Assembly (NCBI GenBank): GCA_964234715.1
Contig: OZ174287.1
From: Podarcis melisellensis
Lineage: Eukaryota
Length of the DNA: 64,000 nt
Reading direction: 5' to 3' (one strand)
This document shows positions 7,748-64,000 of this stretch, one piece after another. How positions within the stretch are numbered: position 1 is the first letter of the stretch; the number at the start of each line of letters is the position of its first letter. Both the position numbers and the translations under genes were made by a program. Under the pieces are notes generated by a model. The model saw only the letters and a list, made by a program, of their open reading frames with translations. It had not been told where the DNA came from and did no database searches.

Positions 7748-7848
7748 AAAAAAATATTAAAATACTGTAATACAGAAAGCATGGTTTACCAGACACTGTT
7801 TGCTATCCCTTTGGTTTGGTACTTACTACCTTCCATTTTCTTTTCGAG

Positions 7849-27003: not shown

Positions 27004-27091
27004 CTGGAATTGAAGTAAGAACAGCATTAAGTGAAATAGCTGGATGAAGGGCCTTGATGTCATGGGCTTAGACTCCTGCCACTGTCACAGA

Positions 27092-27329
27092 AGATGAGTT
27101 TGGATTTGATATCCCGCTTTATCACTACCTTAAGGAGTCTCAAAGCGGCCAACAATCTCCTTTCCCTTCTTTCCCCACAACAAACACATTGTGAGGTGAG
27201 CGAGGCTGAGAGACTTCAGAGAAGTGTGACTGGCCCAAGGTCACCCAGCAGGTGCATGTGGAGGAGCAGAGACGCGAACCCGGTTCCCCAGATTACGAGT
27301 CCACCGCTCTTAACCACTACACCACACTG
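27092..27329 (-). mobile_element. Squamate tRNA-derived SINE (Squam3-like)
   Basis: Minus head cagtgtggtgtagtggttaagagc...ggttcgcgtc; closely similar copy at 38774-39011. Confidence 0.88.
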
Positions 27330-27573
27330 TCACAGAACTTGTAAGAACATAAGGGCCTCCTGGATCAGCCCAATGGCCCATCTAATCCAACATGGGAGCC
27401 ACACACACAAGCAGCCTGAAAGGTTACATCAAGACTGCACTGATTGTCATTGTAAAACATACACGTGCTCATCATTCTGGGTAGTGGCGGGATAAATTGC
27501 AACATACTCAGCATTAGGTGCCACTTGGTGTTGATAGAAAAGTTAAAGTGCTTAATGGATTGTGTCCAATGAG

Positions 27574-27843
27574 CATAGGATCACAGAATTGTAGAGTTGG
27601 AAGAGGGTCATCTGGTTTCCTCTTTACCAGGTTAGACGTAACCAATTCCCTCAACCCTTCCTCATAAGGCTTGGTTTCCAGACCCCTGATAATCTGGGCC
27701 GCCTTCCTCTGCACACATTGTAGCTTGTTAATATCTTTCTTAAATTGTGGTGACCACAACCGGGCGCAGTACTCCAGGTGTGGTCTGAAAAGAGCAGGAC
27801 TATTCCTTCCCATGATTGGGACACTATACTTCTGTAAATGCAT
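27574..27843 (-). mobile_element. CR1 LINE 3' fragment
   Basis: ORF 27514-27843 contains RPHLEYCARLWSPQFKKDINKLQCVQRKA..IRGLE; CR1 tail ttccaactctacaattctgtgatcctatg. Confidence 0.9.
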
Positions 27844-30800
27844 TTAAAATAGCAATATGAATTATTATTTCTCATTTATTTATTTTTTGAACTTTTAATT
27901 TGATGTATTTTTGGGTTAGCTGCCTTGGACACTGTAGAAAGACAGGATATAATCAATTGCATTAAAACAATAAAAATACAACTGTCAAGGGCCTAACATA
28001 TAAAATAAACCTTTTGGAATAAAGCAGCATTAAAACAAGAGTCCCAAATGCTTTGTATTTCTCCCTTCACAAATGCTGCACCAAATAAAACTACTTTTAA
28101 CTTAACATAACACTTAAGAATACAGTATTAATATTCATAGATAAGATTCTCTGTACATATAAAGGTTTGGACTAGGCTTCTGCCTGATGCACCAGTTTTC
28201 TAATGGGAAAGGGTTGTGTTTGTTTTTGCATATTCTTCAAACTGTATTCTTCCGCCTGCAGCTTGAAGTGGAAGAGTTCAGAAAAATATCTACCACTTAA
28301 CCCTGTTGATTGTGCAAACTTGTCCATACAGAGCCTTTTGCTGCAGCACCCAGAAGAACTGAAAGTTCTGGCAGAAGTTCTGTTTTGGCTGTGAAGAACC
28401 CAGGACTGTCAGCTCTCTGGCCAGTGAGTGGGGCCATAGAGTCTTTGCCCTTCCCTTAGCGGTGGAAAACATGATTCTAGCAGCTGTTGGCCCACCGGAC
28501 ACTGGGCGAGGCAGAATGTCCTACATTTTGCTCCTTAAATAGCTCCAGGGATATGTGAAGTAATAGTAAAGTAGAGTTCCTCTGAGCACATTCAGAGTGC
28601 TTTCTTCTCTAGAATAACCTCTCTCATGGACATGTTAGGAGCAAGACGCTGCAAGCTGAAGGGTTTCCAGACAAGTGTCGCAGCATTCAGTATAAAGGCT
28701 ATGGGTTGTTTCACACAAGTATGTTAATCACTTGTTGACTACGCAGCATCTAATGGCGACATGCATGGCGAATGAGCCATTATAGATTAATCACCACAAA
28801 CATCTTTCATATCACCTGATGTCAGTTCACGCACAATGCTTTTCAGCCCAGAGTCAGTTCACACATTCTGCTAAAATAGCCAAGTACAGAGTAATGAAGT
28901 GATGTAGATGTGTGTGTGAACAAGCCCAAGGCACCAGGAAAAAAACAGAGAAAGGGATACTGTGCCAGATGGATGTAAAAGGCGAAGACAGAGACCGGAC
29001 CCACCTTCTTCCAAGCACTGCCTTGGCCTGAGCACTGTGAGGTATTTTAAAACAATTTCGGCTTTGATGGATTGCTGGGGAGCCAGCGATTGTTCATAAT
29101 CAAAAAAGGAAGAATGGAATGCAAATGAGCACAAGCCGAGAACCATCGGCGCCGGGCGCTTTATTTCCCTGTGCTGTGCCAAAAAGAATTAAAACAACAT
29201 TAAACTCCCAGCAATAATGTTTAAGCTCTCGTTTCCGAGTGCCAAATTGCACCGCTCTGGATCATACAGATGTTCGTTAATTATGCTAATTTTTATTAAA
29301 CTATTAAAATGGAGGAAGTTGCACTGGCAGAGCCCCGGCCCGAGGTGAACCCTGCCTTGCGTCTGGAGGTGCTAATTTGCCAGCTTCCCTCCATAAGCTG
29401 CTGATGCCGGAGGTTTGGGCTTTGCTTAGCGAGGGGGAATTTTTTTGTATGGGGTGATGGAGAGGATGACTTCTTCAGCAGAAAATGTTGAAACAAATTC
29501 CAGTGAGTGCTAGATGCTAGACCCTTTGGACCTGCACACATCCATTGATCCAGAGCAGGCTTGACCATGAGGACAGAGGAGGTAGCTGTCTGTGGTGGCT
29601 CAGTTCAAGAGAGGCTCCCCATGCCACACCAGCAATCCTGAGTCCAGGCTCTTAACCCTCCTTTTGTGGTAGCTGGCTCCCCATGGAGAGTGTGCTCCAG
29701 GACCTGTGCACTGTAGCTTAGAGTTAGCAGGGGACACCCCTGACTCATGCCAACAAGGGCAGCAAGAATGCCGAGTTTGTCCTACAGCAATCCAGCATTA
29801 ACAAGGGCTTTATTATTATTATTTTGCAGGAATGTTTCAGCACTGTTGTAACATGTCTAAGCACTGTAACTTTGAGGTCAGCTTCCCAAGCAGAGTTCAG
29901 TTTCAAAAATGATAGTGGATTTTGGGGAAAATATACAGAGTTAATTCCCAGCCCCTCTCCTGGGCCCAGGGTAAAAGGCCTCAACAAAAGGATATCCTTG
30001 GCTAAAAATTTACATCCTTCAGGTGTCCTGCACCCCCTGATTCATAGGAGTACTGGTATGAAAGACAGGTACACTGAAAGACTGTCTAAAATTGGTGTGC
30101 TGATTAGTGAAATCAACTGGAGGCATGTAGTATCAAAAATTAGGAAAATCTGTAATGTTCTTGGCTTGAAGTCCGAACTGTGGCCTAGGAAATGGGATCA
30201 CAGGATTTCACCTTACCTGCGCTGACTGCATGAACTGAAAGAGGTGTGTGTGTTATCCAAGATGTGTAAAAAGATCTCAAGAACAGAACAGAAGCTTAGC
30301 GCAGGGGTGGCATCCCTGCCGATTAAAAAAGATGAAGCAAAAATATGCAAAGGAAGTAAAAATGAAATGCAAAATTTCTTTCCCCATCCCTTGGCTCCCA
30401 AATTTCTTGTCAGCAGCAAAGCTGAAACAGCTGCATGCGGATCAATCTTTCCTGGGCGTGGGGGTCCGTGGAGGGATTGCACATGCACAGACATAGAAGA
30501 ATTTATGTTGCTGATGTACACCAACTAATGGGAAAACAATATCTAAACCTATGGGAAAGGACATATAAACCAAAATAGGATGCCGACAAGCGACAAGGGG
30601 GACATTTCTTGGCTACTCTCAGCCTTCTCATGCGGCTGCTTTACTGCTTTTCGACAGCGTCACGGGTGTCCTTTGCATGCCTCCTGTCTCGATGTCTGGA
30701 CTCTCTCTACCGTGCCACAAGAAAATGCCTTAGCAAGCAGGTAGCGGCAGGGGGTAGGGGGAGGAAGACTGGGAGGAAACAGCAGGCAGCTCTCGTAAGC

Positions 30801-31692
30801 CGGAAAAGAGAATGAAGACCCCTGCTACAGAGCCGCTCGCTTTTAATTTCCATCTGCCCCCATCCCCACTGTTTCCCTATTTGTAGAGCGTTCTGCATGA
30901 CAGCTCAGCAACTACCCAAGATGACCACTGATACGTCTTTGAGGGGCAAGGCAGAAACAGCCTCAGGGCTGCAGCGCTCTTTCGCTTTCTGTATAAAATA
31001 TGTGTGCATGTATATTACTGGGGTGCAAATCTAATGGGAAGTTATCACCCACTGAGTTCTTTCTCGGTAAGTCCAGATGCAGCGGCTGGTTGCAGTTACT
31101 CAGTGGTCATAGGAATATAATGAATGTGCTTTATACTAAATCAGACCTTTGGTCTATTAAACCCAGTGCAATGTACTCTGACTGGTGACGGCTCTCTAGC
31201 AAAGGTCCTTCCCAGTCCTACTCTGTGAGGTTTTGTAACTGGAGATGCCTATGCCTTGGAACAAACTTGTTACTTTCTGCATGCACATGACATGTTCACC
31301 TGCTGAGCTAAACCAAGGTAAGACCTGCTGCTTGTTAAAAGCTAGTTTTAGATGTTATATATACCCCACATGCAGACAAGGAGAAGCCCCTTTATGTGTC
31401 GCAAATGCTTTATGCAGGAAGAGTGATGTTTAAAAGATCCTTACCAAATGCGTATCCCTAACCACAAATAGCAGGAGCATGCTTCTGATTCTGGCAGCAG
31501 CTTTCACAACTGCTACTCATGATGGGTAAAGTGCATTTAGTGAGTATTTTAAATATTACTGTTCAGGATCTCATGTGCAGTACATGTGCAGCATCTCTGT
31601 AACTAAGCATTTCCTGAGGGCTGCTTGTCAGCGAGGCAACACAGAAACAGGCTGTCATTTGCAAATAATTAAGAGCAAAAATGAATTTGACT

Positions 31693-31694
<2 letters not shown>

Positions 31695-31726
<32 letters not shown>
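31695..31726. repeat. (GT)16 microsatellite
   Basis: Direct reading. Confidence 0.97.
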
Positions 31727-31729
<3 letters not shown>

Positions 31730-33784
31730 TTCAAGCAAGTTTTCCTTGCTACAATTTATTTCCAAAAATGTGAATCTATAGTCTCCTAATTATGGTTGCA
31801 CTGGGATTTAGAGCTAAGCTAAGCTCTTGCAAAATTCATCCCACTTGCATGAGCTGCCAACAGCACTGACAGTGGAATAAGTGAGACAATTTGCAGAACT
31901 CTGAACTAAGCTGTTGACGGGAACAGCAAACTACAATATGGCCACAGATAAGATTGACAGGAGGAGGAAGGCCGGGCTGAATTCCTAGTCAATCACCAAA
32001 GAGGTTGGTTAATTTTTAGAAGCAAGAGGTGTCTGGAATAAACACTCAAAGGAATTCCTTCCTTCCGTCCCAGAGGTGTATGCATTGGATATCCTGTGGT
32101 TACTCAAAGTATACAGTAACTACATGTTATGAGAGAGGTGGGGTTGCTATCCAAAACAGCAGTCTGGTTTTGAGCTCTCCCCTTCCTCCTCCATAACATG
32201 TAGTAAAACTAACAGCATGTTCTGATACCATCATCATGTTGCATTTTTCCTTGGCACTGACAACCAGTGATTTATCTCTATTGATTTATTGCAATTATTT
32301 ATATCCTGCCTTCCAGGATGTGGCAAATCCTTCCATGATGTGAGGAATTTGATGTGAAGCAATGACGAGGAAACACGCAGCACGACATCAAGAAATTGGC
32401 TACGTTTTACTACACATTACGGAGCAGGGAGAACTCAATACAGAACTTCTGCCTTTGCTGGTAACCCCGTATTTCTCATCATGTACAGCTCCGCCCTCAC
32501 TATGAATGGAAAGAATCACTACACATGCTCAGAGGCACTCTTTTTTCATGTACTTAGTTTTCTCCAGAGCAGAGCCCCAGCACCAGCGGCGGCCCACACA
32601 TGAGGCAAGGTGAGGTGACGTCCCACTGGGGCAGCAGATCCCAATGTTGATCTCTCCCCCCCACCTTTGTTCCTGATGTAGATCTTCCCTCGTCCCTTCT
32701 TCCCTAGTGGGAAAGGGGTGCTATTTTGGGGTCTGCCTCAGGTGCCAAAATGTCACGGGCTGGCTCTGCTTGGCACGGAAAATAGATTCTGGGGCTAATA
32801 CATCCTATCTCCCAATTAAGCCTCAGGGTTTGGAGACAAACTCTTTTCTCTATAGTGAGACATTACCTGTTCTAAAACAAAAGGCTGGCTCCACACCCCA
32901 CCTTGCCAACGCTGATCTAGCAATATTTACTCCTCAACCCCAACTTAGCTCTAGTTACAGTCCAAGCGCCTCGTAAACAACCCCGATCCTACTTTGGCGA
33001 TGTAGTTAATCAGCCCCAGTCGCTCACAGAAGATCAATGGCGGGATGATGGATGCCCGAGGAGAAAAGCCAAAATCAATCACAGGCTTATCGGTATATGA
33101 TTGCTTGGCCCCATTATTAGTGCCGGAGCATCATACATTATTGTTAGTAAAATGGAGGCCTCTAATTCATAGGTGAGCTGTGTCACGCATTATTGGAGGG
33201 TCGCTTGACATGGGAGGGTTTTATATTGGGTCGCTGCAGACATCTGTTTACCTCAAAAACTGGCCCAGGGCTGAAAGCTGGCTCAGAACAAAATTTAGGG
33301 CTTAACACTGGAAAGGAGGAAACCTGAGCACAGTGGCCAGTTTTTGGGAATGAAAGAGAGGTGTTAGGGTCTGAATGTCCCCCAGGAAGCTGCAGTGACA
33401 GCTCAAGACGTTTCTCCTGTGCTCATGTGCTGCTCGCCCCCCCCCCCGTCATTTCAACAGGGCTTGCATAGTAGAGAAACTTCCCTGTAGGTAGTGCTCT
33501 ATGAATGAGACCTCTCTCTCTGTCTCTTTATTGCCCAAAACCTATTTTCTGAGATGACAGCCTACATTGCCTCATGGTCAGGCAGAAAGTCATGACGTGG
33601 CCTCTGCCATGGAAGTCTAGCCTTCTTAACCCTAGATATCGGGGTCAGGAAGGGGCCCCATCTCTTCAAACGAGCTTGTACTTTCGTTCCATTTCCTCTG
33701 GGATAGCAGGAACTCCTGCAACTAGGGAAGGGGAAGAGTGTGGAACTTCACAGTGTGGAGATGGGGTGCGGAAGGCAGAGAGAA

Positions 33785-36232: not shown

Positions 36233-36489
36233 GCCAAGTCACAACCTGAATGGTAGACATACGTCACAATAATATTACTACTACTACTACAACTACTACA
36301 ATTTATATACCACCCTTTATCAAAAAATCCAAGGGCAGTGTACAACATTAAAAACACCTCGCCACTCTGGGAACCTCAGTTGCTGAAGGCATGGGATATA
36401 AATTTATTAAATAAATAAGCAACAAATCATAAGAAAGCTCAGTGATCAGCAATACAAGATGCTTTAAAGAATGGCAGAAAGCTATTACT

Positions 36490-37957: not shown

Positions 37958-38038
37958 CAAAAGCTCAGGCGAGTAGCCTTCTCTCTCTTGGTAAAGGTAG
38001 CATACTTCAACTGCCCTTCATAAATCCTCTGCCCACGC

Positions 38039-38175: not shown

Positions 38176-38719
38176 GCCCACGCCTTTAAACACATTCCAG
38201 TTTGCTGCCTTTCTTTCTTTCCATGTGTTTACATTCACCACTCCGCCTCCTAGGCTGGTTCTTTACGTATTCAAACGTTTCTTCCCATAAATCACAATTA
38301 GTATGAATTATTAAATCTACACAACATGCACAACCATCCCATATTACTTCTTTGCTATTAATGTAATCAGAACGCTGCAAAACTCCCACAAGGAACTTCA
38401 TGGGATAGAGGCAAAAAAAGTGTGCAGTTAATTTCCAGGAGGCGGCAGGACAATTTGGGGATGAACACTGGAAGCAGAGATGTCTTGTAATAAGGTAAGC
38501 CTTCCTCAGATGCCTGGTTTTGGCAGCTCCCATTCATTTCAATCAGGCATGTACAGGACAGCTTCCCAACGGGTTATGCCCTTGTTTATTATGAGTGCAA
38601 GGGCATGCCAGTTAGATTTTCCACATCAGGCATCAAAAGATGGTGGACTCATTCATGAGAAGGAAGACAAAGAGTACACAATAATGTCTGACTTTGATTG
38701 TTTTCTTAAGTTATCAAAA

Positions 38720-39118
38720 GCCCCTGACTGTTAGGTCCAGTCGCGGACGACTCTGGCATTGCGACGCTCATCTTGGATTTGGATTTGATATCCTACTTTA
38801 TCACTACCCAAAGGAGTCTCAAAGCAGCTAACATTCTCCTTTCCCTTCCTTCCCCACAACAAACACTCTGTGAAGTGAGTGGGGCTGAGAGACTTCAAAG
38901 AAGTGTGACTGGCCCAAGGTCACCCAGCAGCTGCATGTGGAAGAGAGGAGATGCGAACCCGGTTCCCCAGACTATGGGTCTACTGCTCTTAACCACGACA
39001 CCACACTGGCTCCTTGCTTTACTGGCTGAGGGATCCGGGGTACAGCTTCCGGGTCATGTGGCCAGCATAACTAAGCCACTTCTGACGAACCAGAGCAGTG
39101 CACGGAAATGCCGTTTAC
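38720..39118 (-). mobile_element. Sauria SINE fragment (38720-38773 and 39013-39118) interrupted by a Squam3-like SINE (38774-39011)
   Basis: Flanks join as ...gctcatct|tgctttactggc...cagcttccgggtcatgtggccagc, a Sauria SINE body; the insert matches the 27092 element. Confidence 0.85.
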
Positions 39119-40947
39119 GCCACCCATGTCCCTAGGTACCTAAATACGGTTACCCTAATGTCTCAATATGCTCTTGATAGGGGCTTGTGGCACTTAGTTG
39201 TAAACTCAAAGGTGAGAGAGGTGAGATACACCAATGCAAGAGGAATTGTGTTTCGCAGGGAATGCATCCTAATGTTGAGGGGGAAATTTAACATAATAAA
39301 ATTTAAGACTTAAATCTTGATGAACTTTAAGGTAAAAATGTTTGGTATCAACTTGTCAAGTCTATCACTTTTTTATCAACTTGTTCGGCTTTCACAAAAT
39401 TCCTTAAAGCCAACCGGATCAACAAATAAAATAAAAATTAAAAAAATCATTTGTTTTTGTAATGATGCTTGAATTAAGAGAATTCTGCTCCCCTACCAAA
39501 GTGTAAAAGTGCTAGTATATTTGCCTTTGTTTCCTGCAGACAAGTGCATTATTTAAAAACAAGGAGGTTCCCCCACCCTTTTTCCTTTTCCTTGAACTTC
39601 TATTTGGGGAAAGAACCTTGTGCAACTGAAAAAAACTTGTATGCTGGATTGGGATCGGTGGTTTGTCCTAGCACTTTGTATTATTTTACTTACCTTGGGA
39701 ATTTTTAAAAAATAACAACGGGTGTCCAGCTTAGATGCCCCCCTGTTTTTTATTATTTTGAAGACAGTGTGCACCCCCATATGTAAGCTGGCGGGGTTGG
39801 GGCGCTCCTGATGTAAGATCTCGCCCCCGCTTTGGAAGAGTGACAGACTTGATAACCTTCTGGTCTTTCCCAGTTAAAAGAATTCCATGATTACATATTA
39901 GTTCTTCTTATGTTTGCAAAGTGCTTTACAATCCTAATACCATTTATCCTCCACCCACCCCATTAAAAAAAAAGAAAAGCATCCAAGTTCAGAGACAATA
40001 GCTTGGTTACAGCATTTCTCACCCTCTTCCTCCCCCCTCCACAATCACCCCAAGCCAATGGGATCGCAAAAATCACGTGGTGCTGCCATATTAATATTTA
40101 TTCCATAAAAGCGTGGCGGCTCCTTACCACTCCGCTGCGCCGCTCTGACCGCAGTGCCAACCCTCAGGCACCGCAACACAATTTGGAAACAATGTGACGG
40201 AAATGTTTAATCTGTGCAGCCCATCTGTGCTGCGTATTTCTCCACATCTCCCCGAGAGAGGCGCCTTTGAATCTCCACACTGCCTTTAATATTCTCCTAA
40301 ATCATTCCCCCCACTGCACTTCAAGGGCCATTGCTACAATTTCACAGGTTCATCGAAAGTGCACCAGGGAGGGAGGGGGGATGTTCCAGGGTGTGTGTGT
40401 GGAGGGGGGGGGAAGCAGGGGTAACAGGGCATTTGTTACTTGAGATTTTTTTATTTCATTTTATACTAATTTCCAGGGATTACTCTTGCTTGTGCCCTTT
40501 GCAAAGAGGCAGGGGGTGGGGGAAAACACACCCCAAATAAAGACATCAGGCAGCTGGCATGAGTAAGGTTGCTTTTAAAGAAAGCTGGTTGATACAGAGG
40601 GAAACATTATTCCCTAAGAGTCCAGCTCTAATCAGCTTTCCAATTTCAGGCCATGGGGCAACTGTCTGTCCTATGAGCTTCAGTGGGGATGCCTATGATG
40701 AACTGATTTGGCAGGTCCCATTAAGTATATGAAGAAAATCACTTTGTTTGTCATTCTGAGATTTGGAGATCCGTGGCCCCATAGCTGTCTAGGGCAGCCA
40801 CTACTGGAGCAACTTGCTCATGTAAGCCACCAGACCAATACAAGCCTCATAGGCGCCCATGTGCCAAACCAGCACAGAGGTCTGCTACACTGGGTATGCA
40901 TAGGCCGATTGTTTAGGACACAACAGCATTCGTCCAGCAGCACAGTA

Positions 40948-44179: not shown

Positions 44180-44196
44180 GGGTCATCTTAAGGTCG
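44180..44196 (+). promoter_or_regulatory. DR5 retinoic-acid response element-like site
   Basis: GGGTCA-tctta-AGGTCG: one perfect and one 5/6 RGKTCA half-site, 5-nt spacer. Confidence 0.5.
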
Positions 44197-50100: not shown

Positions 50101-53100
50101 GCTATTCCATAGCAAGTAGCTAGTGTGGAAGGACCCTGAAAAAACAGAATTGCCCTACGACAGGTTATCAGTAGCTCAAACCACACGGCAGCTGCTGCGG
50201 CGAGTGTGATATAGCAAGATGTGCACTGCACCGTGGCTTCACATTCATGCAGGTGCACCAGAAGCAAAGATGTGTATGCTCCACCCCCATACCTTCAGAG
50301 ATTTAATTCCAGAGAAATGGGTGAGAAGTTGAATTGTGAAGAAGGACAACTCTACCAACTCATAATAACACAATTCAACAAAGCATCCCCCAAGAAAGAC
50401 AAAAAGAAAGACAAAAATAGTGGCAATGATGTAACAGGGGACAGGAACCACATGTGATCTTACATTTGAGATTCCCCATTATGAAAATAGTTGCTCACCA
50501 TGCCCCTGTTTTTAGCACAAGTTCTTGTACAGTAGGGGGGCATGTTTATATCTTAGTGAGCCCTTGACTTTTCCCAGGTGTTGTTGAATATCCTGCAGAA
50601 GAACACAAGAGTGGTGAGGTCCACTGCCCTGACAGTTTGCAACCCCAGCCCAGGGCAAAGCCATCTATCCCATCTCCAACACCCTAGAGAAGGCATCAAT
50701 GTCAAAATCTGAGTATCTCCCTCACTGAACCTTTCTGGTGAGCCTCATACAGATTTCTCCATATTGCTCTAGTGACTTCTACCACAAGTATTCCTCTACA
50801 GATGTTCTATTGGAAATGACCTGAACCTTGCAGGCCAAAATGTAGGTGGGGTGGGTTTGGGGTTTTTTCTGGCAACAGGAAGTTTGAGCAGAGACACCTG
50901 CACTTGGGTACAGTAAAAAACAGCTCTAAGAAGCCTGCTTTTCTCTCATTCAGCTCATAGAGCCTTAGAGAAATCCAGATGGTCCTAATTTTGGGGAGCA
51001 GGTGCATCGACTCAGTGCTTTTGATCCCTGAGGCTCAGACATGTGGGATGCTTTCACTGGTGCTTGTCCCCACCAGTCCACACGTCTGATGGGGACCACG
51101 GGGACAGTGCCATTCACATGGCTGGTTCACCATGATGAGTCCAGGGGAAGGTGCGTCTCTGGGAGGACGTTATTTGCCTTTCTCTAGGGCACCTCCTGCC
51201 TGTTCAGCTGTGAACGAGATCCTGTCATTTGGAGGTACCCTGAGATGCTATTTTCTTACGCTTAGGCGTGTGACAAAACTTTCCACAGCAAGAAGGGGTG
51301 GCATTACCCCATTTCCCAGGATTCTGTAGGTCAAATGAAGGAAAGAGGAATTCCCCACGGCTTCTCCCTTGTGAAAATCAAGATGCTTCTGCTGCACAAG
51401 GGAGAACTGAAGGAGAATTTGGGGAGTGGAGGGAGGAAACAGATCAAGGGGAAAAGAATGGCATCACCTTTTCTTTTCTTTTTGACAGCTATGGTTTAAA
51501 TGTTTACTTTCTGTATCAGCTCAGCTGCACCTTCGAAACTGCCGTTTCATAAATACAACCGGGACGGCATAAGCTATAATTTGGAGATAGCAACCGCAGG
51601 ACATATCTAGATCCGTTTGCGCTACTTTAATTAAATACTGCATTATGGCTTGTGACAACTTCATCGCTAAAGCGTAAATGAATGTGGAATTAAAGTCTTA
51701 CTTAGGCTTTCAATATCATCATCTTTTGGGGTCTTTTTTTGTTTTGTTTTGTCTGCTCACGTCTTTCTTTCTTTTTCTTTTTGCTCCTCACCCTCCATTT
51801 CTCAGTTTAACAAAGAAAAGAGCCATAAAATCAAGATGCTTGTTCATTTACAGATGGAGCAGGCGTGGAAAAAGAAAAAGAAAAAAGAAAAGGCAAAGAA
51901 AGGAAGAAAAGAAAAAGATGGGCCACGTTACACAAGTCTATAGCACTCCCTCTTCTGAGGTTTCTCTGATAGCAGAAAGAATTCCTTTGATGGGAAATGC
52001 TTGAATATTAATTGTGTGTGTGACTCTTATCTTTCAAACCCGGCTCCTTATGAATGATAGTTCTCATGGCTGTGGGATTTTGCCTCTTTTGTGTAGAATT
52101 TAATAGCCTGCTTTTAATTTAATTTAATTTTTTTATATATAAAAAAACAAAACTGTTGATTCGTTGCTACTCTGGTACATTAGAAGGCTCTGGAAGTTCA
52201 TACCATTTCATTTTTGATCTCCACAAATGAAGCAAGAGCAGTTTCCCCAGTCTCTGCTGCCCCTTCCAGCCCCCCCCCCCGACCACATCGGTAAACTTGA
52301 AAGGAGTTATGGGGCTAAAGCAAACTTATTTTATTCCCAGAAATGTAAGCCCCGATCCCATCAATCTATCTGCTTCTCCTCTAATGAAAAGCCAGACCGT
52401 ATGTGACATTTCGTGGCACCAACCACTTTAAATGTTACCAACATCAATCGGGTTTTTAAATGTTACTCACGTCTCGCACGGATTGGGAAATGGTTTTATA
52501 ATTATCTCCTGCTCTCTAAACGAACTGAGAGATTTCCACTGTTGTTCTTTCTTTATTTTTTTAAATTCTTTATCACAGCCAAATTAAATGACAATGCATA
52601 TTTATATTCCAAAGCTCCAGGAGATAAAAAATAAAAATAAAAATTTTAAAGCCTAACAAGTTTTTTGCAAATGTGTAGTTGCCTTCTCACCAAGCTCTGG
52701 CACAGTAAAGGAAGTTCTAAAGAATTTGATGGGTTCTTTTTTTCTTTTCTTTTTTACAGACAATAATTGGATTTACAAAAATTCCTTTTCTCCAAATCAT
52801 TGCGAAGTCGGAAGGAAGGAAGAAGTTGTGATGTTGTTCGAGCTAAATATTGTGCTGACAAAACCTTTTGCAGTTCCTATTTTTGAACTCTGCAACCTAA
52901 ACAGAAATGTTTGCCTCCTTTCATCTTCCTAAGAAATAACCAGCATCCTTCAATAATTAGTAATGTTAAGAGGAAAAGCTTTCCTCTGCCAATTTTAAAT
53001 AGGGTGCCACATTGAAGCATCGCCCCCTTTCTCCCCATCACCAACATGGGCAGATTAGCAAAGTGTTTAGAACTAAATCTTTGTCTAATAAAGGCAGAGT

Positions 53101-55502
53101 TGGTTTTCACCAAGAGCTGCTTGTTATAAACCTGCCTTTGGAAAATGGAAGGAACGTCTCATTTAAAGACACAAATTTCCCCGATAATATATTCGAATGG
53201 AAACGCACCGAATCCACTACGACACGGGCATAACTAATAAATTTGCAATATTTCAGCCTCAACAGCCTACAACGGTTCGTTTTAAAGATTTATGTGGTAA
53301 AAAATTACTCGGCGATGAATGGAGTTTATTCTGTGCCGGATTGGAAGGTATAAGGAATTAAACTACTGTCTTTAGCAGTGTATTTATTATTACCTCTGTC
53401 AAAGAACGAAGACTTTAACAGCATCCATGATAAATTTCAGCGCAGAATAAACGGGGTGAGGGAACGGCACACATGCAAACACAAGCACATATATATTATA
53501 TAAAAATATTACACACAACACTCCGGAAAATCCTGCACATGTCTGCCTAGTTCTTTTTGCCTACTGGATCATTCGCATTTCCAGACCAAAAGAAAAATAA
53601 AATTTGGAACTCATATAAGGGCCGTTTATTATATCATATAAGGGACTGTAATATTCTGGAATACAGGATGTCTCTTTAAATCAAATTATGCTTCTAAAAA
53701 TAACAAGCAGCTCAATGCCCAGAAAACATGCCTATGTGGAAATGTCCACGTGGAAGATAGAGAGGAATGCAAGCTAGCCTTAATGATACCTGTCAAGATA
53801 ATGGGCACAGTCTTATCCAGGTGAGATCAGCTATTGAACGACAATTCTATTTTTCTACTCTGAAGACAAGAGCAAAACTTGAACAGGTTACTTTGCTGAA
53901 TTCGAATCCTAAATTCCAGCTCAGCTTTTCCATTTAGGAAGATGAAAACAGGATTGGATCAAGATAGAAAATCCAAATGGCACTTCTTTCCCAACAATTA
54001 ACCCGGTGAATAATCCACTAGGAAGATTCCCTATGCAAGCATCGCTGAAGTGAAGGACTGTGAAGCACAGCTCCTATGCATTTTAGCGGGGCTTGCGCAG
54101 CAGAACTTCCCAGTAGGTCAGATCTGTCCATCTCCAACTCCGCCACTCTTAATGGCAACCCAAACCTGCTACCTGGCTGCCTCATGATTCGGCCATATTC
54201 CAAGATAATTGAATGCAGATTAAATTTAGCAGCATTCAAGTCACAAACAGGGTCTGGAGGGTGGATTCCCTACCCTCCAGCCATTCAATGACTGCTTATG
54301 GGTATAGTGGGGATTCCAAACTGCATTAGTTGTTGAGTTACAGAACCAAGTGGTGGTAGTTCTTCCACACTGATTAACACAGAGTATAAAAGCGGACGTG
54401 TGTGTGTGTGTGTGTAACTGAACCTCCTTTGCTCACACTATGAATGCCTGTCAGTTGTATACTCCAAAGCAGTTGAGAATGAGAGATGTTAACATTACCT
54501 ATGGATTAAAGAGCAGAAGCTCTGTGTGACTTGACACCTTTTAAACAACCTGACATATTCACAGTCAAGGGAGTAACAGTGATTTAAAAAAAGGATTTTC
54601 CACCCATCGCTTCCTTCAGTATACACTTATGGGTGACAGGGGAGATCACAGTTCACATCAAAAAGAGTGTGTGGGTATGATGTAAGCAACCGAGACTGTT
54701 TTCGCAGACAGTGGGACAGCCTGAGAATATGGAAAGGGGAAATGATGGGCAATTGCAAGTTCGGAAAGGAGTTCACGTATTTTAGAAGAGCACCCAACTC
54801 GCCATCACACAACCTGCCATAGGCAAGGTAGCATTTAGGATGGGAGGGAGAAGAGTGAAAAACACCTGGAGTTTATATGATTATAACCAGATTAATTTTA
54901 GAATGGCACAGCTATTGGGCAGCGATAGATTATTCGAGGGGTAGAATCACATGATTCCAGCTCCAGCTCCCACCCTACCCTGCCCTGTAACCTTTCTGTC
55001 TTTTTACAGAACGATGTATAGAAAATTACATGGGAGGAATAAATTGTCCTGGGGTTTGTTTCTGGATGGCTGCTTCTTGTCTGAGGGTGGAGATGGAGGG
55101 GGGTTGTGTTAGGGGAAGCTTTTCGAAGTGGGGATATGAGGTGGGGAAATAGCCTTAAGCCTGAATTTGACCGGTGCATGACCGTTGCCTTCTGGCTGAC
55201 CTCAGATTCTATTCCCAGGCCTTTTCCGATTCTATAGTCTCCTGTCCCCGTGGGGGTTATTAATGGAAGCAAAAATACCCCCCTCCCAGCCAACGACTAT
55301 GTCTTTCGTCATTGCAATGCAGCTTGTTAAGAATGGCAAGATGCTGGGGGGGGGAATGATATGTGGGTTTAAGTGCTACTTGCGAAAATGGTCTTAGTTG
55401 AAATCAAGGTTCATCACAGCGTCATCTGACTGTTCTTACGCCCCCCCCCTTCTGCCAGCTCTAACGCCATACTATTCCCCTCCCTGCACTCCCTCAGAAA
55501 GA

Positions 55503-55516
55503 CCACTAGATGTCAC
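55503..55516 (+). promoter_or_regulatory. CTCF-like core motif
   Basis: CCACTAGATGTCAC, one change from CCACTAGATGGCAC. Confidence 0.5.
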
Positions 55517-58500
55517 CAGCCTCCTCCTTTCACTCAAGGGTCTGGGGAAATAAAATGACGCTTAAAGCAACAGAGAGAATTAGAAATGCTGGAATTTATT
55601 TATTTATTTGCTTGTCATTCACAATGAAAAGGAAATCCTGGTGTATTAAAATCATCATCCAGCTATAGAATGTATATAAGAGCTGGTTGGTTGTGGGTGG
55701 GGTGGGGTGGGGTGGGGAAGAGATGCTCTATAGTGACTGAACAGTGGGTTTTTTGTAATATTATTCTAGAAACAAATAGTTAAGGAAAGAAGCAAAAGCA
55801 TAACAGTGTTCTGGCTGACTGATCTGAACCCAATGAATATTGCTGGACCTGCAGAGAATTTCGCACATATTGCTGCACTCACTGAGAATGAATGTCCAAG
55901 ATAGAATTTTTGGGATTCAGAGAAATCCTGGGGGGATTTGTAGTTCTGTGTAGCCCTGCAGTCTGTCTCCCATGAAACAACATTTGGAGAAAATATAGAT
56001 TGTGTTTGCTGAATCAGGATGCTTATGGAAGCTGCTGACTGCATTCTTAAAGTTAGGTGGGTCGAGGTAAAGATCCTAGGACTTAAAAAATGAGTGGCAT
56101 TTGGAGCCGTAGAGTCTCAATCAATGGCCATTTAGTGTGCTCTTAACTGAATCATAGGAAGTGAAGAGTGCTGAAGATCAAGGCCATCTGCTTGCCAAAA
56201 AGCAACATTTCCCATACTTTAGTCCCTATTCCTGCCACAAGTCACCCAGCAAAACCCAGGACACATTATTATTATTACCTGTAATAGTAGTAGTAGTAGC
56301 AGTAGTAGTATACAACTGTTCATCCATAGATCACAGGGTGGTTCACATCATGCCACAATTAAAGCAAATGAACAATTAGCCTGCCACACTAAAAAGCATC
56401 TGCAGATCAGAAAGCTCTGGATGACTCAAGCGAACGAGCCTAGTACACAACATAGACAGTTCAAAATACAGCCTCTAAAATCATTGGCTAATCTGAGCTG
56501 GGGATAAAAAATTCCTCCCTGATTGCTAATATGATAACCACACAATTCTGAGCATGGGCAAAACTCCTAACAGAAATCTATTCCACACATTACATGGCGC
56601 AAACCAAACTATGTGACTAAATGTACACTTGGAAGGGAACTACAGACTATTCTGGTCTCTGAAGAGCACACTTTCATCTTGTATATGTTTCCAAACATTT
56701 GTCTGCTTCACACATAACATTTTTAGTTGTATTAAAAAAAGCCAAACAGGTGTGTATACATGCTTGGAACACGTCAGCCGGTGTCCCCTTCCTTCCCCCT
56801 GCCACATCTCTGCTCTAAAGTATCCTCTGTTTAAAAATGTTGCAGTTTGACTGTACTCATTTGCATGGAATATTTAGTTAGTCTCTTATTTGTGAGGCTC
56901 CTCAGATGGCTTCAGGCAAGCCATTGTTGTCTGGCTCACAACTTTCATATGGATAATGCTGGTGATGGTTGGGTAGATGGGTTCTCCGTCTCATTCATAA
57001 TCCTTGTTATGAGGCTCTGATATTTAATCACACCAAAGCACTTTTCACACACATACACATGGTTCTATGGAAACGAACACATAAAAGTAACATATCTAGC
57101 AGTTCTTCCATAGGAGTGTAGGAGTTTTGTGGAATGCAAGCCCTCTGGGGGCAGAGACAGTGTCAAACTGGTGCTCTGTACAGCACCATTTAGCTGGTGC
57201 TAAATGTTAAGGGGAAGTTATTTTTAAAAAATTAGGGACATCTGGCAACACTAGTGCCAAGCCGGACCGCTAACACTAGTAAGGTTTGCTACAAGCCCTG
57301 AGTGTCGTTTAAAAGCACCTGAGGCTGCAAGTCGGCTAAGGTTGCTGAGCGTAACCACTGACTGCTCTGTTAATGGTGCTAGTGAGGAGCTCCAGAACAG
57401 CTTTATCAGTTGTGCCAGTGGTGCGTTTTTAGCTCAAATTCTCCAGCTTTGCTGTGTTCAAGAAGATTGCCTAGGTTTTAATGCCGGAGCCACAGCAGTA
57501 AAAAAGATGAACCACTTAAAAAGGGGGGGGGGGCTTGAAGCTTACAAAGCACATGACATCCTGTCACAGACCTCATGGCGCCAGTCAAACACCTGCAGGC
57601 TACACCTATCCTGCGGCTGGCAATGTAAGCCAGGGATCCTGGAGGCTGTGCCAGGCAGTAGTGCCAGAAATTGAAAGATCAAGGCTGGAATTTTTGAGAC
57701 ATGCTGGTTATGCACAAATGAGAAACCCACCTTTCATCTCACACAGACAAGAGGGGTGAGTTAGCAGATGTTAGAAGATTTAATAGACAATGTTTTTATC
57801 TAGTGTAGACAGGGAAAGCAAGCACAATGGTAGGCTTACCTATGTCTGGCCAGGGGTATTGTTAGGAGGTAGCCCATGTGGACCCTGCGTCTTTCATGCC
57901 AAGCCCACCGCCCCTTTTTTAAAAACCTTAGTTTTTAAAACTTTGCTTAGCTGGAGTCTTAATATGGTCAGAGCCTTTGCTTACAGGGTGGGTGGGTATG
58001 ATGCAAAATGCAGGGCAGGTGAGACCTCAGCTACATGTCTACTTTCTTAATTTGCCCAGGGGCACTCTATGCATTTATACTCTGAACGCTTTAATAACCT
58101 AGCAATGCCTGTGTGTGTGTGGCAGAATAAAACAGGTGTGAAATTTGGTTGTGGGTGCTGAATTCAGCATCCTGGAAATTCCTGTTTTCATTTATTTATT
58201 TTTAATGATTCAGGTTTCTAGCAAAGACCCACTTGAAAGTATGTAGAAATTCTGCCTTTAAATGTAAAAAAATAAAATAACAAAACAAAAAAACTTTGCT
58301 TACGGAGCAGCTTTCCCTCTGAAAGTCAGTCTATAATCTGCAACTGTAAATTAGTGCATGCAATTTTTATACAAATTTGTGCTGTGGGTCTGTACTCTAA
58401 GTCTTTTAGTGATCCACCAATGTACCAGGACAAAGGCTTTCCCCAGTCCAACAATGCCAGAAACTGAAGCTGGGCCTCTAGAGGTCAAAATGTGTGCTCC

Positions 58501-58546
58501 AATACATGTTCATGGCCATTTGTCCTTGGAGTTCCCTCCCTACAGT

Positions 58547-58728
58547 CACTGGCGGAGGAAGAGGCGTGCGGCGGGAGCGCACCGGCCCCGGCAGCACGAT
58601 CCCGGCGGGGTGCCATTGCAGCTGCCCCCCGCCTGCGCTGGGCGCCACACCTCTATGGGTGGCACACCACACCCCCGGGATATGCGCCAGCCCCGCCTGC
58701 TCTCCGCCCCCCAGATGCTCCGCCACTG
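58547..58728. mobile_element. hAT MITE (CpG-rich, probably young)
   Basis: Perfect TSD CCTACAGT; TIR cactggcggag / ctccgccactg (one mismatch). Confidence 0.92.
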
Positions 58729-58822
58729 CCTACAGTATGTAATTTTGCCTTGTTACACCTTTTTAAAGGCCAAAACCTCCTAAAATCTAACTAAAGAACT
58801 GAAATATAACAAGTATTAAAAC

Positions 58823-58966
58823 ACAGCTTAGTTGGTTAGAGCGTGGTGCTAATAACACCAAGGTTGTGGGTGTGATCCCAATACGGGACAGCTGCAGATT
58901 GCAGGGGGTTGGAATAGATGACTCTCAGGGTCCCTAGTCTCCCAATGCTACAGTTCTATGATTCTA
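58823..58966 (+). mobile_element. tRNA-headed SINE with CR1-derived tail
   Basis: agcttagttggttagagcgtggtgctaataacaccaagg head; tail gggttggaatagatgac...ttctatgattcta. Confidence 0.8.
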
Positions 58967-59194
58967 GCCTGATGGGTCTCTAACAGCCAGCCCAAATGGA
59001 AAGGTCATATATTTATCTTATACTGCTTTTGTGAATGTGCTCATTCCCTAGTGGAAGGAGTTTCAAAGTACTGTATCATGAAAAGAATGATCATTTTTAG
59101 CAGGACATTATAAGGCTCCTTGGTTGTTGCCAGACCAAAAGTGAAAGAGAAATCAAACGGGTTTCTATCCAACCTGATGTTCTGATGGTAGTTA

Positions 59195-59418
59195 GAGGCC
59201 TGTTCGCAACATGAAAAGAGCGCAACCTGCAGCGACGCGTCTGCGCACGCACAGGTTGCGATTCATCACTTCTGCACACGCGAGTGACGTCATTTTGCAC
59301 GTCTGCGTATGCGCGGGCGATGAAACCCGGAAGCAACCCTTTCCGGTACTTCTGGGTCGCAGCGGGACATAACCTCAAAGAACGTAACATGAAGCGAACG
59401 TAACCAGAGGTACCACTG
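59195..59418. mobile_element. Truncated Tc1/mariner MITE (right TIR only)
   Basis: Ends taaccagaggtaccactg|TA, same TIR family as 3967 and 40948; CpG-rich interior. Confidence 0.8.
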
Positions 59419-62400
59419 TACAATCCAACTTAACACAGCAACAGTACATAGGAGTAGAAGACAGTCTCACATCTTAAGTTTGTCAGCCCCAAACTGTTTT
59501 AAGATGCCACTCTCTACTCCAGTTCATTACAACTAACCCAGGTGAGTGGAACTACATTTACTTGCTATGATTTCCAGTGTTCTCTTTCTCTCCTCAACCC
59601 CTCATATTTATGTTTGTTGCATAGTTTAATGCAAGGACTCAGGTATGTCACATTCATGTTTTTATATGAACTCAGAAAACATCTTACATGTGCATCTAAA
59701 AATGCAAAGGATGCTTTTGCGCTGAGCAACCCCACCCAAACATCTGACTTCCATAAAGGATTAAGCCTCAGCACTTGTAATTTCACAAAACAATGGATTG
59801 TCTCAGTGTGAAGACTATTCAGCTTTCAAGTACAGGTTCTTGTATTTCACTCTGCTGAACAGTTTAATACTGCCATGCTGGTAGAAGCTCTGGGGCAGTT
59901 TGAATGCTCCCCCCCACCCCCCACTTTTCTCTTACATGACTCTGAGGGCTAGTTCACATAATTCTTTTCCCTAGGTTGAAATCAACATGAATAGATTTAC
60001 AGTTGTTGAACTAGTCTTGTGAATAGCCCAATATGGATGTCTCTGAGCCATGAATCAACACATCCTGATTCATACCACTCTCTTGAGTTATCAAGATTTA
60101 AATGCTGGAACTGCAGAAGCTCACTTTTCATTCCCACAACTTGGATTCCAACACAATATTTAGAAACTATTTCTGGCTCTAGTAAAGACAAAAAATTGAG
60201 ACTGAAAAACCACCAAAGTATAGGGCACATTTACAAGTAATGCTTAAATTCCCATATTTGTAGATCAAAGGAAAACTTCAGGGACCAGAACATACCCTGG
60301 AATTAGTAAGTATTTTGCTTTCTCACTTTCCTTAATAATATTGGCAAAATGGCACATTCCAAACAGAGATGAAACAAAATAAAATTTGACAAACTTTCAG
60401 AATTTGAATATTTGAATCAAATCAAATGTTTTCAAAAAATGACTTTGAGGATATTAAAAAAAACCCTCTAAATAATCCGCTGATTTATTATTCTGATGAT
60501 CTATTTCAAATAAAAAATGTGAGGTAACTCTTTGCTAAATTCAATTTATACCATCTTTTACACCATTTTATTCTCACAAAAATCCTTCATTTGGCATACT
60601 GATTTTAGTCCAGTTAGCAGACTTTAAATCACAATTTTATAGCCAAAATAAAAACTTGAGAATTCCCCTATAAAAAATAAAAAAAATAAAAATCAGACTT
60701 GCACTATAGACTTTTAATGCTGCTTCACACATTGTTTTTAGGTCACACCCAGAAGTGGCTTGTCATGCGGGGTAAAAACTATCTGGCAGGTGAACAGCTA
60801 TTGCTTACTGGGAGGGAGATAAGGAGGGGTGAGATAGAAGGGAGGTCAGTGTGGCGCAAACACACCAGTGAAGTAAATCTGGCGCTCCTGTCAGTGAGTC
60901 TGCACCATGCTGACCACCCCAGTACTTTACTCCTGGTAAGTAACACACCTGCACAGAAGCTAGTGTTGCAGTTCCATTCCACCCAGTTAGCTGCTTCTGG
61001 TTGCACCTAAAGTGCTTTTAAACATTTGAAAATGTAAATTTATAAATGTGATGAAGAGCAAACTACACATTACATGTAAAGTTAGGCCAGAGGCCCCTTT
61101 TCAATAGGAAAAGTCAATTGGGGTATGTTTTGGAATGGAGAAACAGAGGGCATGGAAAGGGTTTAACTCCTCCAATTGCCCACTCCCCATGTTGTGGCTT
61201 TCACGTGTTAGAAGTGGCCATTGGGCTACTAGTGTATGCTGTTGTGTATACTGTTTGGCTCCGAGACTCACTGTGACGTGTTGGCAAATCTGGATTTTTG
61301 GTTGTGTTATGTGTGATGCAGCCCACTGGGTGTCACTGGTGAAAAGAGCTCATTATGCAAACAGAATAATAATAAAAAAAATCATACAGATTCTGAGCCT
61401 TTACAGGATTTTAGGATGTTTACTGTTGTTTGCACTTGACAACACTGAATGCAGTACTGCATTTCAGTGCTACTTGAGACCTTGGTTGCATTCCTGAGTG
61501 GAACTATCTAAAATGCTGAAGAGGAAAAAAACCAGCTTCCATTAAAATTAATTTTAGAGAAAATGTATGGGGTTCATGCTGTTGGTTCCTCTTGCCCCAG
61601 TAGCAAGATCAGATAGATTTTGCCTACTTACTGTTGAATCTCAGCCAACTAACCCCCCAGTCCCAAAATCACATCTCCCCACGGCTGATGCGCAAAAATG
61701 TCAGACAGGACCTTAGCAGCAGACGGCATGCATTCCAAACAACACCAGATGGATTTTTATATTAGCTACTATTTCATGTTCAAGGCACAGCGACCGCAAT
61801 GCTTTAAAAGGGAAAAAAAAGAAAAAAGCCAGCCAGCCTCTGCACTGCTGCTACGCTTGCTTCGGCGAGATTAATTCTGCAAAATTAATTGGGACAAGAT
61901 TGAAAAGGAAATTAAAATGCAGCTGAGTGAACAGGCTTTTCAAACACCTTTCCCCCCTCTCTCACTCCCCCTTCCTTGCTCTCTAACTATCCCCACCCCC
62001 ACACCATCAAGCTTTATTAAGCCTCGGTTTCTTGGATGGCCATAGGTGAGTTCTGTTGTCATGCAAAATAATTTATGAAAGGAAGACACTCAGGACCAAT
62101 TGGTTACACGTGAAGAAGTTGTGCTGGAGCTCCAAACCGGAGCCACTGAAGGGAGTTAAAACCAGGTCATAGTCTCATGTCAAAGGGAGGGAGGGAAATA
62201 AGTCAGACACTATTGAACTGCATGCATGTTCCTTCACATATAGATGTTTGATATATCTTAATTTTTGGCGGTATTTAGGATTCGGGAATGGTATATTCTA
62301 GAAAATGTAACATTCTGGCATATATATGGTTAATAAAAAATGGATATAGAATTGCCAAGAACTGCTGTGGTGACATTACTAAATTATTTTGAAGGGGTAG

Positions 62401-64000
62401 TCCCAGGTAGACTCAAATAAATTATTACAAATATTAATTACTGCACAAATAGGGATGGGCAGATTATTCTATTTACTGTCTATGTCAATATCCCATGTGG
62501 TCATTCATAAGCTTCTGTTCAATTTTTACATTAATCTGTGAATCTTTGAAATAAAAAAACCTGTGCAGAGTTTGTATTTAAATATGTATTTTATCACAAA
62601 ATGTGTATCTAAATATGCATTTGATTTATATTTTATCCTAAATTATGTATATTGGCATGTTTGTTGAGAAGTGTATTGCAAAATTTAGTGAGAAATCCAA
62701 AGAACAACTAGGCTCCAAATCATGCCTTAGTCCAAGAGTTGTGAATTAGATTAGTCTGCTTAAAAATGTGGACCGAACAAAATTCTCCTCCACCTCTATT
62801 CAAGCTAAATACTGGCAATGGAATGAACATCTATGAACTGAATGGATGACTGAAAACTGGAAAACCGTTATATGTTCATAATGTCTAGTTGGATAGAACC
62901 AAGAGGTAGCTATAGTCTTGAAAACGAAGAAACTGAATTATCATCATTATTTGACATATAATGTTCTAAGTATGTAAATGTATCTAACATTAATGTTAGT
63001 AAAAACCCTCTTAATTAGGATGGCCATGTGTTCTACTGTACAAAGGTCAGCCATCTATTTGAAGGGCTGTCCAGTCTAAGTCTGATTCCTCATCCCTTTT
63101 CTATTTCAAACTTAACAAGTCAACTATCTTCTAGGTTGGCATGACATTAGCTGGGACATGGTATTGGTTGTGTTGGTTGGTTCTGTTCTGAAAATAATAC
63201 ATAGACCTATCATAATGTGTGTCCCCAAATACAATTTGCAACACAAATTTATTTGGTAGTGAAAATCGTTTAAAATTGCGTATGTGTATTAGGGATGGTT
63301 CATAGATATAGGGAAACTAGCAATGGGGAACCTCTGGCCTGCGGGCTTAATTACATCCCAATATAACATCAGATATGGAGCAGCTAAGACACAACTGCAA
63401 AGGAACAACTGGATGCTTAAAATGCACGTCCAATGACTTCTTGGCAAGTGGAGTTTGATGATAGTGCCAATCAGCAGACTAGCACGGACAATAAGCCCCT
63501 CCGAAGTTGTCACCTGATGACCTACCCACCCACAAAGTGGCTGGTGGAGGAGGCCAGGATATGATTCACCAGTTGGATCCAATCCCCCACCACTTATGTA
63601 AAGATTTTATTTCTCACTGCTTGATGAAAATTAATGTCTGAACTGATTTGAATGGAAAAGCCTGTGTGAGAATATTTAATAATTTTGTTTATTTATTTTT
63701 CAGACTTACATCCAACTCTTTGTCCCAAGACCTCAGGGTAGGTTATAACAAGATGCAAGGTGATGTGAATATTCTATCTGTGGTACGTTTTCTATGCTGG
63801 CCCATCAGACCCAGCATCTCCACTCAACACCCTCAGAAAACTGGGAGCTATGGAAAACAGTGATGGACTCTGGGGTATCAAATTCCAGTGGCACCCTGTG
63901 CAACACCAAAATTCAGCACCCTGCTGTCCGCTGTCCCTCACACTGCATTTCAAATCACAGTTGTGGCATCCCCAAGGCTCTGCGCCTGGTGCGACTGAAC

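Follow-up and report, generated by a model that had tools for sequence, protein, structure and literature searches.

Genomic regulatory blocks are regions in which arrays of conserved non-coding elements (CNEs) surround a developmental target gene and span bystander genes (PMC5728398, PMC5585340). Here we describe a stretch of DNA from the lizard Podarcis melisellensis (contig OZ174287.1; 64,000 nucleotides, hereafter the window), wherein positions 27004 to 64000 comprise nearly the whole last intron of SKAP1. This intron carries a dense and collinear array of ancient CNEs. A preliminary description of the same DNA had proposed that about ten islands in the intron are long-range enhancers of the HOXB genes, with SKAP1 as a bystander that hosts them, and had presented the arrangement as an under-described system.

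Elements of this general type have been reported from other introns of the same gene. Peaks from chromatin immunoprecipitation (ChIP) of RAR are found in zebrafish skap1, and one of these corresponds to an element that is conserved from fish to human and that carries a motif resembling a direct repeat with a five-nucleotide spacer (DR5) (Lopez-Perez et al. 2021; PMC8608873). This element is located in intron 4 (of 12), 12.4 kb past the start of the gene, where it directs hoxb1b-like expression that depends on retinoic acid (RA) and contacts the hoxbb genes (PMC8608873). HoxB contacts detected by circular chromosome conformation capture (4C) in E9.5 mouse embryos enter the 'gene desert defined by Skap1' (Lopez-Jimenez et al.; PMC9286507), and the same study cites Nolte et al. 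2013 for distal elements in this desert. An enhancer in a SKAP1 intron of ovarian cancer cells alters HOXB7 and HOXB8 when it is deleted or activated (PMC8017555). In addition, SKAP1 and SKAP2 are among the 100 human genes that do not code for transcription factors and are richest in ultraconserved elements (PMC13513235). Thus, SKAP1-hosted elements that act on HOXB, a retinoic acid response element (RARE) shared from fish to human, and the richness of the gene in ultraconserved DNA were already in print (PMC8608873, PMC9286507, PMC8017555, PMC13513235), and the locus described here is neither under-described nor a new kind of system. What it adds for Hox biology is that a dense cluster of enhancer-like character, in the last intron of SKAP1, now has precise coordinates in a reptile.

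The lizard elements resemble the zebrafish intron-4 element in their SKAP1 host, in the presence of a deeply conserved DR5-like site, and in their great distance from HOXB in amniotes. Conservation from fish to amniotes is also shared, as exemplified by a core at positions 55162-55205. They differ in location: the lizard elements are found in the last intron, bounded by the penultimate and last coding exons, and the published peak is in intron 4 of 12, so they are separate elements. The published zebrafish primers have no match in the window. RAR binding and reporter activity have been demonstrated for the zebrafish intron-4 element, whereas the lizard elements are recognized by sequence conservation.

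Compared with genomic regulatory blocks in general, the locus is alike in having collinear and extreme non-coding conservation within a host gene that is not developmental, and in having neighboring genes whose synteny is retained from teleosts to amniotes. The hallmarks found here are a non-coding character, conservation at or above the level of an exon, clustering, collinearity and conserved synteny. The locus is unlike such blocks in that its SKAP1 host responds to RA and is not a neutral bystander, and in that the presumed target, HOXB, lies outside the window.

A paralogous arrangement is known for the HoxA cluster, whose 3' landscape resides in SKAP2 (gene order HOXA1-SKAP2-SNX10-CBX3) and includes early and RA-responsive enhancers. 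The two loci share the paralogous gene order and the notion of a SKAP gene that houses distal enhancers on the 3' side of a Hox cluster. Between the SKAP1 loci and the last intron region of a SKAP2-like gene from whitefish, only the coding exons match and no paralogous intron sequence was recovered, which is a weak negative result since it concerns one teleost. The cancer-risk enhancers of human 17q21.32 are another likeness, as they reside in SKAP1 introns, loop to HOXB promoters, and change HOXB7 and HOXB8 expression upon perturbation (PMC8017555, PMC6826789). These human enhancers were identified in adult cancer cells through chromatin marks and risk variants, and not by deep conservation.

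The extent of the intron is set by the last coding exon of SKAP1, which is on the minus strand at about 26908-27003. No other SKAP1 exon was encountered up to position 64000 when the window was searched and aligned to the snake locus, and thus 27004-64000 is nearly the whole last intron. The penultimate exon is expected, from collinearity with the snake, about 4 kb past the window end. Orthologous DNA was obtained through SKAP1 proteins with short gene models from garter snake (Thamnophis elegans), woodpecker (Melanerpes formicivorus), reed vole (Alexandromys fortis) and the pufferfish Tetraodon, and was aligned by BLASTN. The conserved blocks are strictly collinear between the lizard and the snake, the bird and the vole. 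This multi-genome comparison, which the preliminary description had suggested as a check, defines CNEs in the same order among the species.

Conservation coincides closely with the proposed islands. Nine of the ten are conserved in the snake, eight in the vole and seven in the bird. Snake alignments cover 91% of island bases and 18.6% of the bases outside, and the islands contain 90% of all bird-aligned bases although they occupy only 16% of the 27-64 kb region. Among 5000 random placements of the islands, none matched the observed overlap with snake or with bird. The claim of ten conserved islands thus stands for nine, each with a collinear alignment. The remaining candidate, at 31600-32000, was rejected as a conserved element because it has no collinear alignment to any species; it has an observed/expected (o/e) CpG ratio of 0.17 and includes a (GT)18 microsatellite at 31695-31730.

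There are eight strong blocks, six of which are conserved in snake, bird and vole alike, and one of these six, the block at 54.1-55.6 kb, has a core that is conserved in pufferfish as well. Lizard-vole identity reaches 80-85% over 320-410 bp in the best blocks, whereas the last exon of SKAP1 is 82% identical between these species, and therefore several blocks equal or exceed the conservation of coding sequence. In the vole-bird comparison, the 24-kb last intron holds 11 conserved blocks and the preceding 33 kb hold three, indicating that the last intron is a local hot spot of conservation. The blocks do not code for protein. Stop codons interrupt all six reading frames in both lizard and vole, mismatches lack a three-base periodicity, and the lengths of insertions and deletions are not multiples of three. 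No Rfam family matches the blocks, and no Pfam family matches the open reading frames (ORFs) that overlap them. None of ten ORFs in the window has an exact match in a protein collection, and a homology search with the ORF over the island at 38.2-38.5 kb gave a single Logan fragment, which is 99% identical. Such results carry no information, as spurious ORFs seldom enter catalogues.

Retention of CpG dinucleotides was part of how the islands were first recognized. When pooled, the ten islands have a CpG o/e of 0.53 compared to 0.25 in the rest of 27-64 kb, and none of 5000 random placements reached the observed CpG count, although this test is partly circular because the islands were chosen partly by their CpG content. 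Retention holds for the pooled set but fails for two members, 61.8-62.1 kb (o/e 0.29) and 31.6-32.0 kb (o/e 0.17). The ratio climbs with the depth of conservation, from 0.24 in unaligned DNA to 0.41 in snake-aligned and 0.64 in bird-aligned DNA. A reader of the raw sequence was thus able to find deeply conserved regulatory DNA solely from CpG retention and a unique sequence appearance.

The individual blocks, whose coordinates are given without strand and whose outer limits are those of the snake alignment, are as follows. CNE 1 (28521-29485) corresponds to the island at 29.0-29.4 kb and has an amniote core at 29011-29378. Its identity is 78.5% over 992 bp in the snake, 84% over 219 bp in the bird (block 29113-29328), and 80.5% over 380 bp in the vole (block 29011-29378). 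Runs that lizard, snake, bird and vole share without any change occur at 29118-29129, which includes a ATGCAAAT octamer, and at 29183-29207 (25 bp), 29238-29253 and 29255-29308 (54 bp). CNE 2 (30314-31185; island 30.5-30.9 kb) is a weaker element with 69% identity over 892 bp in the snake and 61% over 251 bp in the vole at 30635-30885; no bird match was obtained, even with a restricted search. CNE 3 (32769-33415; island 33.0-33.25 kb) has 78% identity over 674 bp in the snake and a bird-level core at 33025-33182 (77% over 158 bp), and BLASTN gives no direct match between vole and lizard.

CNE 4 (39868-40890; island 40.05-40.35 kb) has an amniote core at 40074-40412. Snake identity is 74% over 1026 bp, bird identity is 77% over 234 bp (block 40188-40412), and vole identity, at 85% over 324 bp (block 40074-40393), is above that of the exon. 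Invariant runs are present in the species alignments of this element as well. CNE 5 (43708-45087; island 44.0-45.05 kb) contains amniote cores within 44046-44728. It is 78.6% identical to the snake over 1474 bp and 71% identical to the vole over 694 bp (block 44046-44728), and the bird alignment (44166-44708) is composed of blocks at 44166-44491 and 44524-44708. A 24-bp run at 44337-44360 is invariant in the four species.

CNE 6 is an AT-rich, non-coding array at 50925-53953 (island 51.5-53.5 kb) that includes amniote cores at 51498-51904, 52358-52541 and 53049-53454. Identity is 69% over 3108 bp in the snake, 63-80% in the bird (blocks 51517-51904, 52358-52541 and, at 80%, 53178-53435), and 76-84% in the vole (blocks 51498-51863 and, at 80%, 53049-53454). 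Sub-windows of 250 bp within the array have CpG o/e values of up to about 1. CNE 7 (54100-55624; island 54.9-55.5 kb) has an amniote core at 55148-55286, with 64% identity over 1623 bp in the snake, 87% in the bird at 55159-55205 (within block 55014-55205), and 73% over 139 bp in the vole (block 55148-55286). CNE 8 (61524-62205; island 61.8-62.1 kb) is 72.5% identical to the snake over 703 bp, 67-77% identical to the bird (block 61715-62163), and 75% identical to the vole over 331 bp (block 61632-62160). Its four-species invariant runs, of 22 bp (61882-61903) and 19 bp, fall within 61882-61923.

Three additional blocks are of lesser depth. One is weakly conserved (38368-38666), overlaps the island at 38.2-38.5 kb in part, and aligns with the snake only (61% over 304 bp), with no bird or vole match. 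Two squamate-level blocks were absent from the list in the preliminary description. The first of these, at 42300-42567, is collinear with the snake (74% over 277 bp) and has no match in bird or vole, and the second, at 57234-57526, is likewise collinear (79% over 296 bp).

The islands had also been described as carrying Pbx-Hox, Meis, RARE, Sox, ZIC and RFX motifs. Island counts were compared with 300 dinucleotide-preserving shuffles, and these motifs were not in excess. There are 5 Pbx-Hox sites (4.2 expected), 4 Meis sites (2.4 expected), 9 RAR half-sites (11.8 expected) and 7 Sox sites (11.8 expected), and a motif scan of the islands returned no ZIC site and no full RFX X-box. The proposed test of enrichment against shuffled sequence thus gives background levels for the named motifs, an outcome that the preliminary description had itself listed as counting against its reading. 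The sole motif above the shuffled background is the TAATKR homeodomain core, with 28 occurrences in the islands compared to 17.9 expected and a density 2.6 times that outside. The four-species invariant runs are AT-rich and contain TAAT/ATTA cores, the ATGCAAAT octamer and TTTAT(G) motifs.

For hindbrain-type syntax, in which TGATNNAT is combined with Meis/Prep sites, the counts are those of the background (5 Pbx-Hox sites versus 4.2 and 4 Meis sites versus 2.4). A Pbx-Hox-like TGATGGAT near 33045 in CNE 3 is retained in the bird and reads TGACGGAT in the snake, and another TGATGGAT at 29085 in CNE 1 is retained in the snake alone.

Two sites of the DR5 type are conserved. The first is a GGGTCA-n5-AGGTCG repeat on the plus strand at 44180-44196, inside CNE 5. 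Lizard, snake, bird and vole have the same half-sites, whereas the spacer is tctta in lizard and snake, cgggc in bird and tggta in vole. Fixed half-sites and a free spacer are the pattern expected for a site bound by a nuclear-receptor dimer. Just upstream there is an X-box-like palindrome and a CACCTG box, which are kept in the snake, altered in the vole and missing from the bird.

The second is a deep vertebrate core of about 45 bp on the minus strand at 55162-55205, inside CNE 7, which reads GGTCA-n6-AGGCAA-CGGTCA-n5-CGGTCA. It includes three GGTCA half-sites, and the spacing between the second and the third is that of a DR5. Across lizard, snake, bird, vole and Tetraodon, about 40 columns of the core do not vary; the five species have the same half-sites, and variation is seen at the first two or three bases of the spacer. 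GGTCA-n6-GGTCA recurs in each of the five species at the orthologous position of the last intron, and in Tetraodon the orthologous core lies between the penultimate and last coding exons. The two conserved DR5-type sites are candidates for long-range RA control of HOXB.

In 27-64 kb there is neither a DR5 nor a DR2 that fits the consensus exactly. The window has a single exact consensus DR5, GGGTCA-ggcct-GGGTCA on the minus strand at 6839-6855, which is in GC-rich sequence of the SNX11 gene, outside the island region. Its occurrence is within chance expectation, given that 24 of 100 shuffles held at least one match.

We consider the blocks to be conserved cis-regulatory elements of some gene, and this is much more certain than the identity of HOXB as the target. 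The most likely reading, which we hold with moderate confidence, is that SKAP1 hosts long-range HOXB enhancers. HOXB as the target would agree with the published work on other SKAP1 introns. In such a mechanism, the blocks would serve as distal developmental enhancers at the far end of a HOXB 3' (anterior-side) regulatory landscape that spans the whole of SKAP1, and they would loop to HOXB promoters several hundred kb away. At least two blocks might respond to RA via RAR/RXR, and the remaining blocks might be read by homeodomain, POU or Cdx-type factors. SKAP1 would be a host gene that is partly co-activated with HOXB.

One extension of this reading is offered only tentatively. The 45-bp core at 55162-55205 could be a second ancient, functionally undescribed nuclear-receptor response element of the HOXB landscape, distinct from the intron-4 RARE, and it would then mark the landscape's distal limit, which in amniotes is several hundred kb away from HOXB1. 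If true, this core and the repeat at 44180-44196 would provide the far end of SKAP1 with its own RA input to HOXB.

Several observations dampen our enthusiasm for HOXB as the target. The named embryonic motifs are at background level. The repeat at 44180-44196 is one mismatch from the DR5 consensus, in its AGGTCG half-site (consensus RGKTCA), and the 55.2-kb core carries CGGTCA twice, wherein position 1 is not the R of RGKTCA, so membership of either DR5-type site in the RARE class is not established. The SKAP1 gene spans 302 kb in Podarcis raffonei and 138 kb in king cobra, and with the former length the 27-64 kb region represents the part farthest from HOXB and nearest to SNX11. The blocks are at least about 265 kb into the 302-kb gene, at its far end from HOXB and only 10-20 kb from SNX11. 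Each of the five RAR ChIP peaks that were assigned to zebrafish skap1 is within 12.4 kb of the gene start, in the 5' quarter of the gene, and none is in the last intron (PMC8608873). Finally, SKAP1 is itself strongly induced by RA and may be a real target of the blocks.

This last point leads to an alternative that we consider unlikely, in which the blocks are enhancers of SKAP1 itself, serving its RA-induced or blood-cell expression, and do not act on HOXB. The blocks are intragenic and include the two conserved DR5-type sites, RA induces skap1 12-fold in zebrafish endoderm (PMC8608873), and SKAP1 is the top gene in a meta-analysis of RA responses in four species (PMC7923837). The same findings show that SKAP1 is not a silent bystander, and so its portrayal as a pure bystander has to be given up. 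However, arrays with amniote-invariant runs of up to 54 bp typify the loci of developmental transcription factors rather than those of lymphocyte adaptors, according to the literature on genomic regulatory blocks. Moreover, activation of the SKAP1-intron enhancer in ovarian cancer cells raised HOXB7 and HOXB8 expression and did not raise that of SKAP1 (PMC8017555), and the zebrafish skap1 element gave a hoxb1b-like pattern (PMC8608873).

It is quite unlikely that the blocks look to the other side, either by regulating SNX11, CBX1, NFE2L1 or remoter factors, or by acting as a boundary or architectural element that closes the HOXB domain. Their position, 2-35 kb from the 3' end of SKAP1 and adjoining SNX11, is suggestive of such a role, as is the synteny of skap1-snx11-cbx1-nfe2l1 from pufferfish to lizard. 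SNX11, CBX1 and NFE2L1 are broadly expressed genes, which speaks against them as targets. Furthermore, the CTCF core consensus has no match in 27-64 kb, and few places in 1-27 kb retain CpG outside the SNX11 exons.

A function at the level of RNA, with the blocks as unannotated exons or structured portions of a non-coding RNA or as alternative SKAP1 exons, seems very unlikely. Conservation alone does not separate function at the DNA level from function at the RNA level. Nevertheless, the lack of an Rfam match, the stops in every frame and the lack of codon periodicity argue against an RNA role, and the AT-rich composition, the abundance of homeodomain sites, and the combination of fixed half-sites with a free spacer all point to recognition of DNA by proteins. 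Finally, a reading of the islands as CpG clusters formed by chance, or as residual unique DNA without function, would fit the background motif counts and the unconserved island at 31.6-32.0 kb. It is exceedingly improbable, and the alignments refute it for nine of the ten islands: the blocks are collinear, with 70-85% identity between amniote lineages whose split dates to roughly 300 million years ago, and one core is kept in a teleost.

The islands had been described as free of TEs, with TEs falling between them. TEs were surveyed by self-BLAST within the window, SINE (short interspersed nuclear element) queries and A/B-box scans, without a repeat library, and the resulting map is incomplete. 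Self-BLAST revealed very few repeats within the window. A tRNA-derived SINE resembling MIR/CORE elements is located at 27099-27335, with a second copy at 38778-39015 that is 89% identical, and a Sauria-type SINE head is located in a non-conserved spacer at 58806-58960. SINEs of these MIR-like and Sauria types point to a wall lizard. All three recognized SINEs are in spacers, outside the conserved blocks. This is consistent with the proposed distribution of TEs but does not establish it, because only these three could be recognized without a repeat library.

Two CpG-rich stretches flank the Sauria-type SINE head. The one at 58531-58745 has a GC fraction of 0.66, 18 CpG per 250 bp, and CTACAGT on both flanks, and the one at 59196-59410 has a CpG o/e of about 1.1. 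Snake, bird and vole have no conserved counterpart of either stretch, and neither has a second copy in the window. They are probably young, lineage-specific insertions.

A segment of 241 bp that is 94% identical between vole (18991-19231 of its locus) and garter snake (6433-6673) is found in an upstream SKAP1 intron. It is AT-rich, contains TGATAAAT and TGATGGGTAAT motifs, and occupies the same relative position in the gene but the opposite orientation. A horizontally transferred transposon was considered and rejected, as the segment is an ultraconserved element of that intron. It resembles an ultraconserved enhancer that underwent a local inversion in one of the lineages. The segment shows that the CNE array extends past the window in the upstream direction. 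In the woodpecker locus, which has a GC content of 57%, long purine-rich tandem arrays of GGAGGAGGAAAGAGAAGGGGAGA-type units occur at 30450-30910 and at about 33.9-34.8 kb, where they have expanded between conserved cores.

The window as a whole has a GC content of 43.5% and a CpG o/e of 0.25. It has a single gap of 200 N at 2487-2686, upstream of the SNX11 coding exons. These exons are on the plus strand at 4260-4423, 5344-5454, 7832-7996 and about 9363-9515, code for a PX domain, and match the solved SNX11 structure and Tetraodon snx11. Among structures in PDB, the PX-domain exons match SNX11 with an E value of 3e-12 and SNX10 with 1e-3. The exons of SNX11 and SKAP1 were searched one by one, without a joined spliced model.

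The last SKAP1 exon codes for the C-terminal half of an SH3 domain, and its ORF matches Pfam SH3_9 (E value 1e-3). In a library-wide search, the proteins closest to this ORF were the annotated SKAP1 proteins of Podarcis raffonei and P. muralis, and the C-terminal sequence encoded in the window differs from the annotated Podarcis SKAP1 by one residue. The exon aligns with the garter snake, woodpecker, vole and pufferfish loci. The order SNX11 then SKAP1 is as first claimed, and Tetraodon retains the order skap1-snx11-cbx1-nfe2l1. SKAP1 and SNX11 are annotated in P. raffonei as tail-to-tail genes whose 3' ends overlap by about 5 kb, and in the window the 3' untranslated region of SKAP1 at 25023-26139 aligns with the snake over about 1.1 kb at 60% identity.

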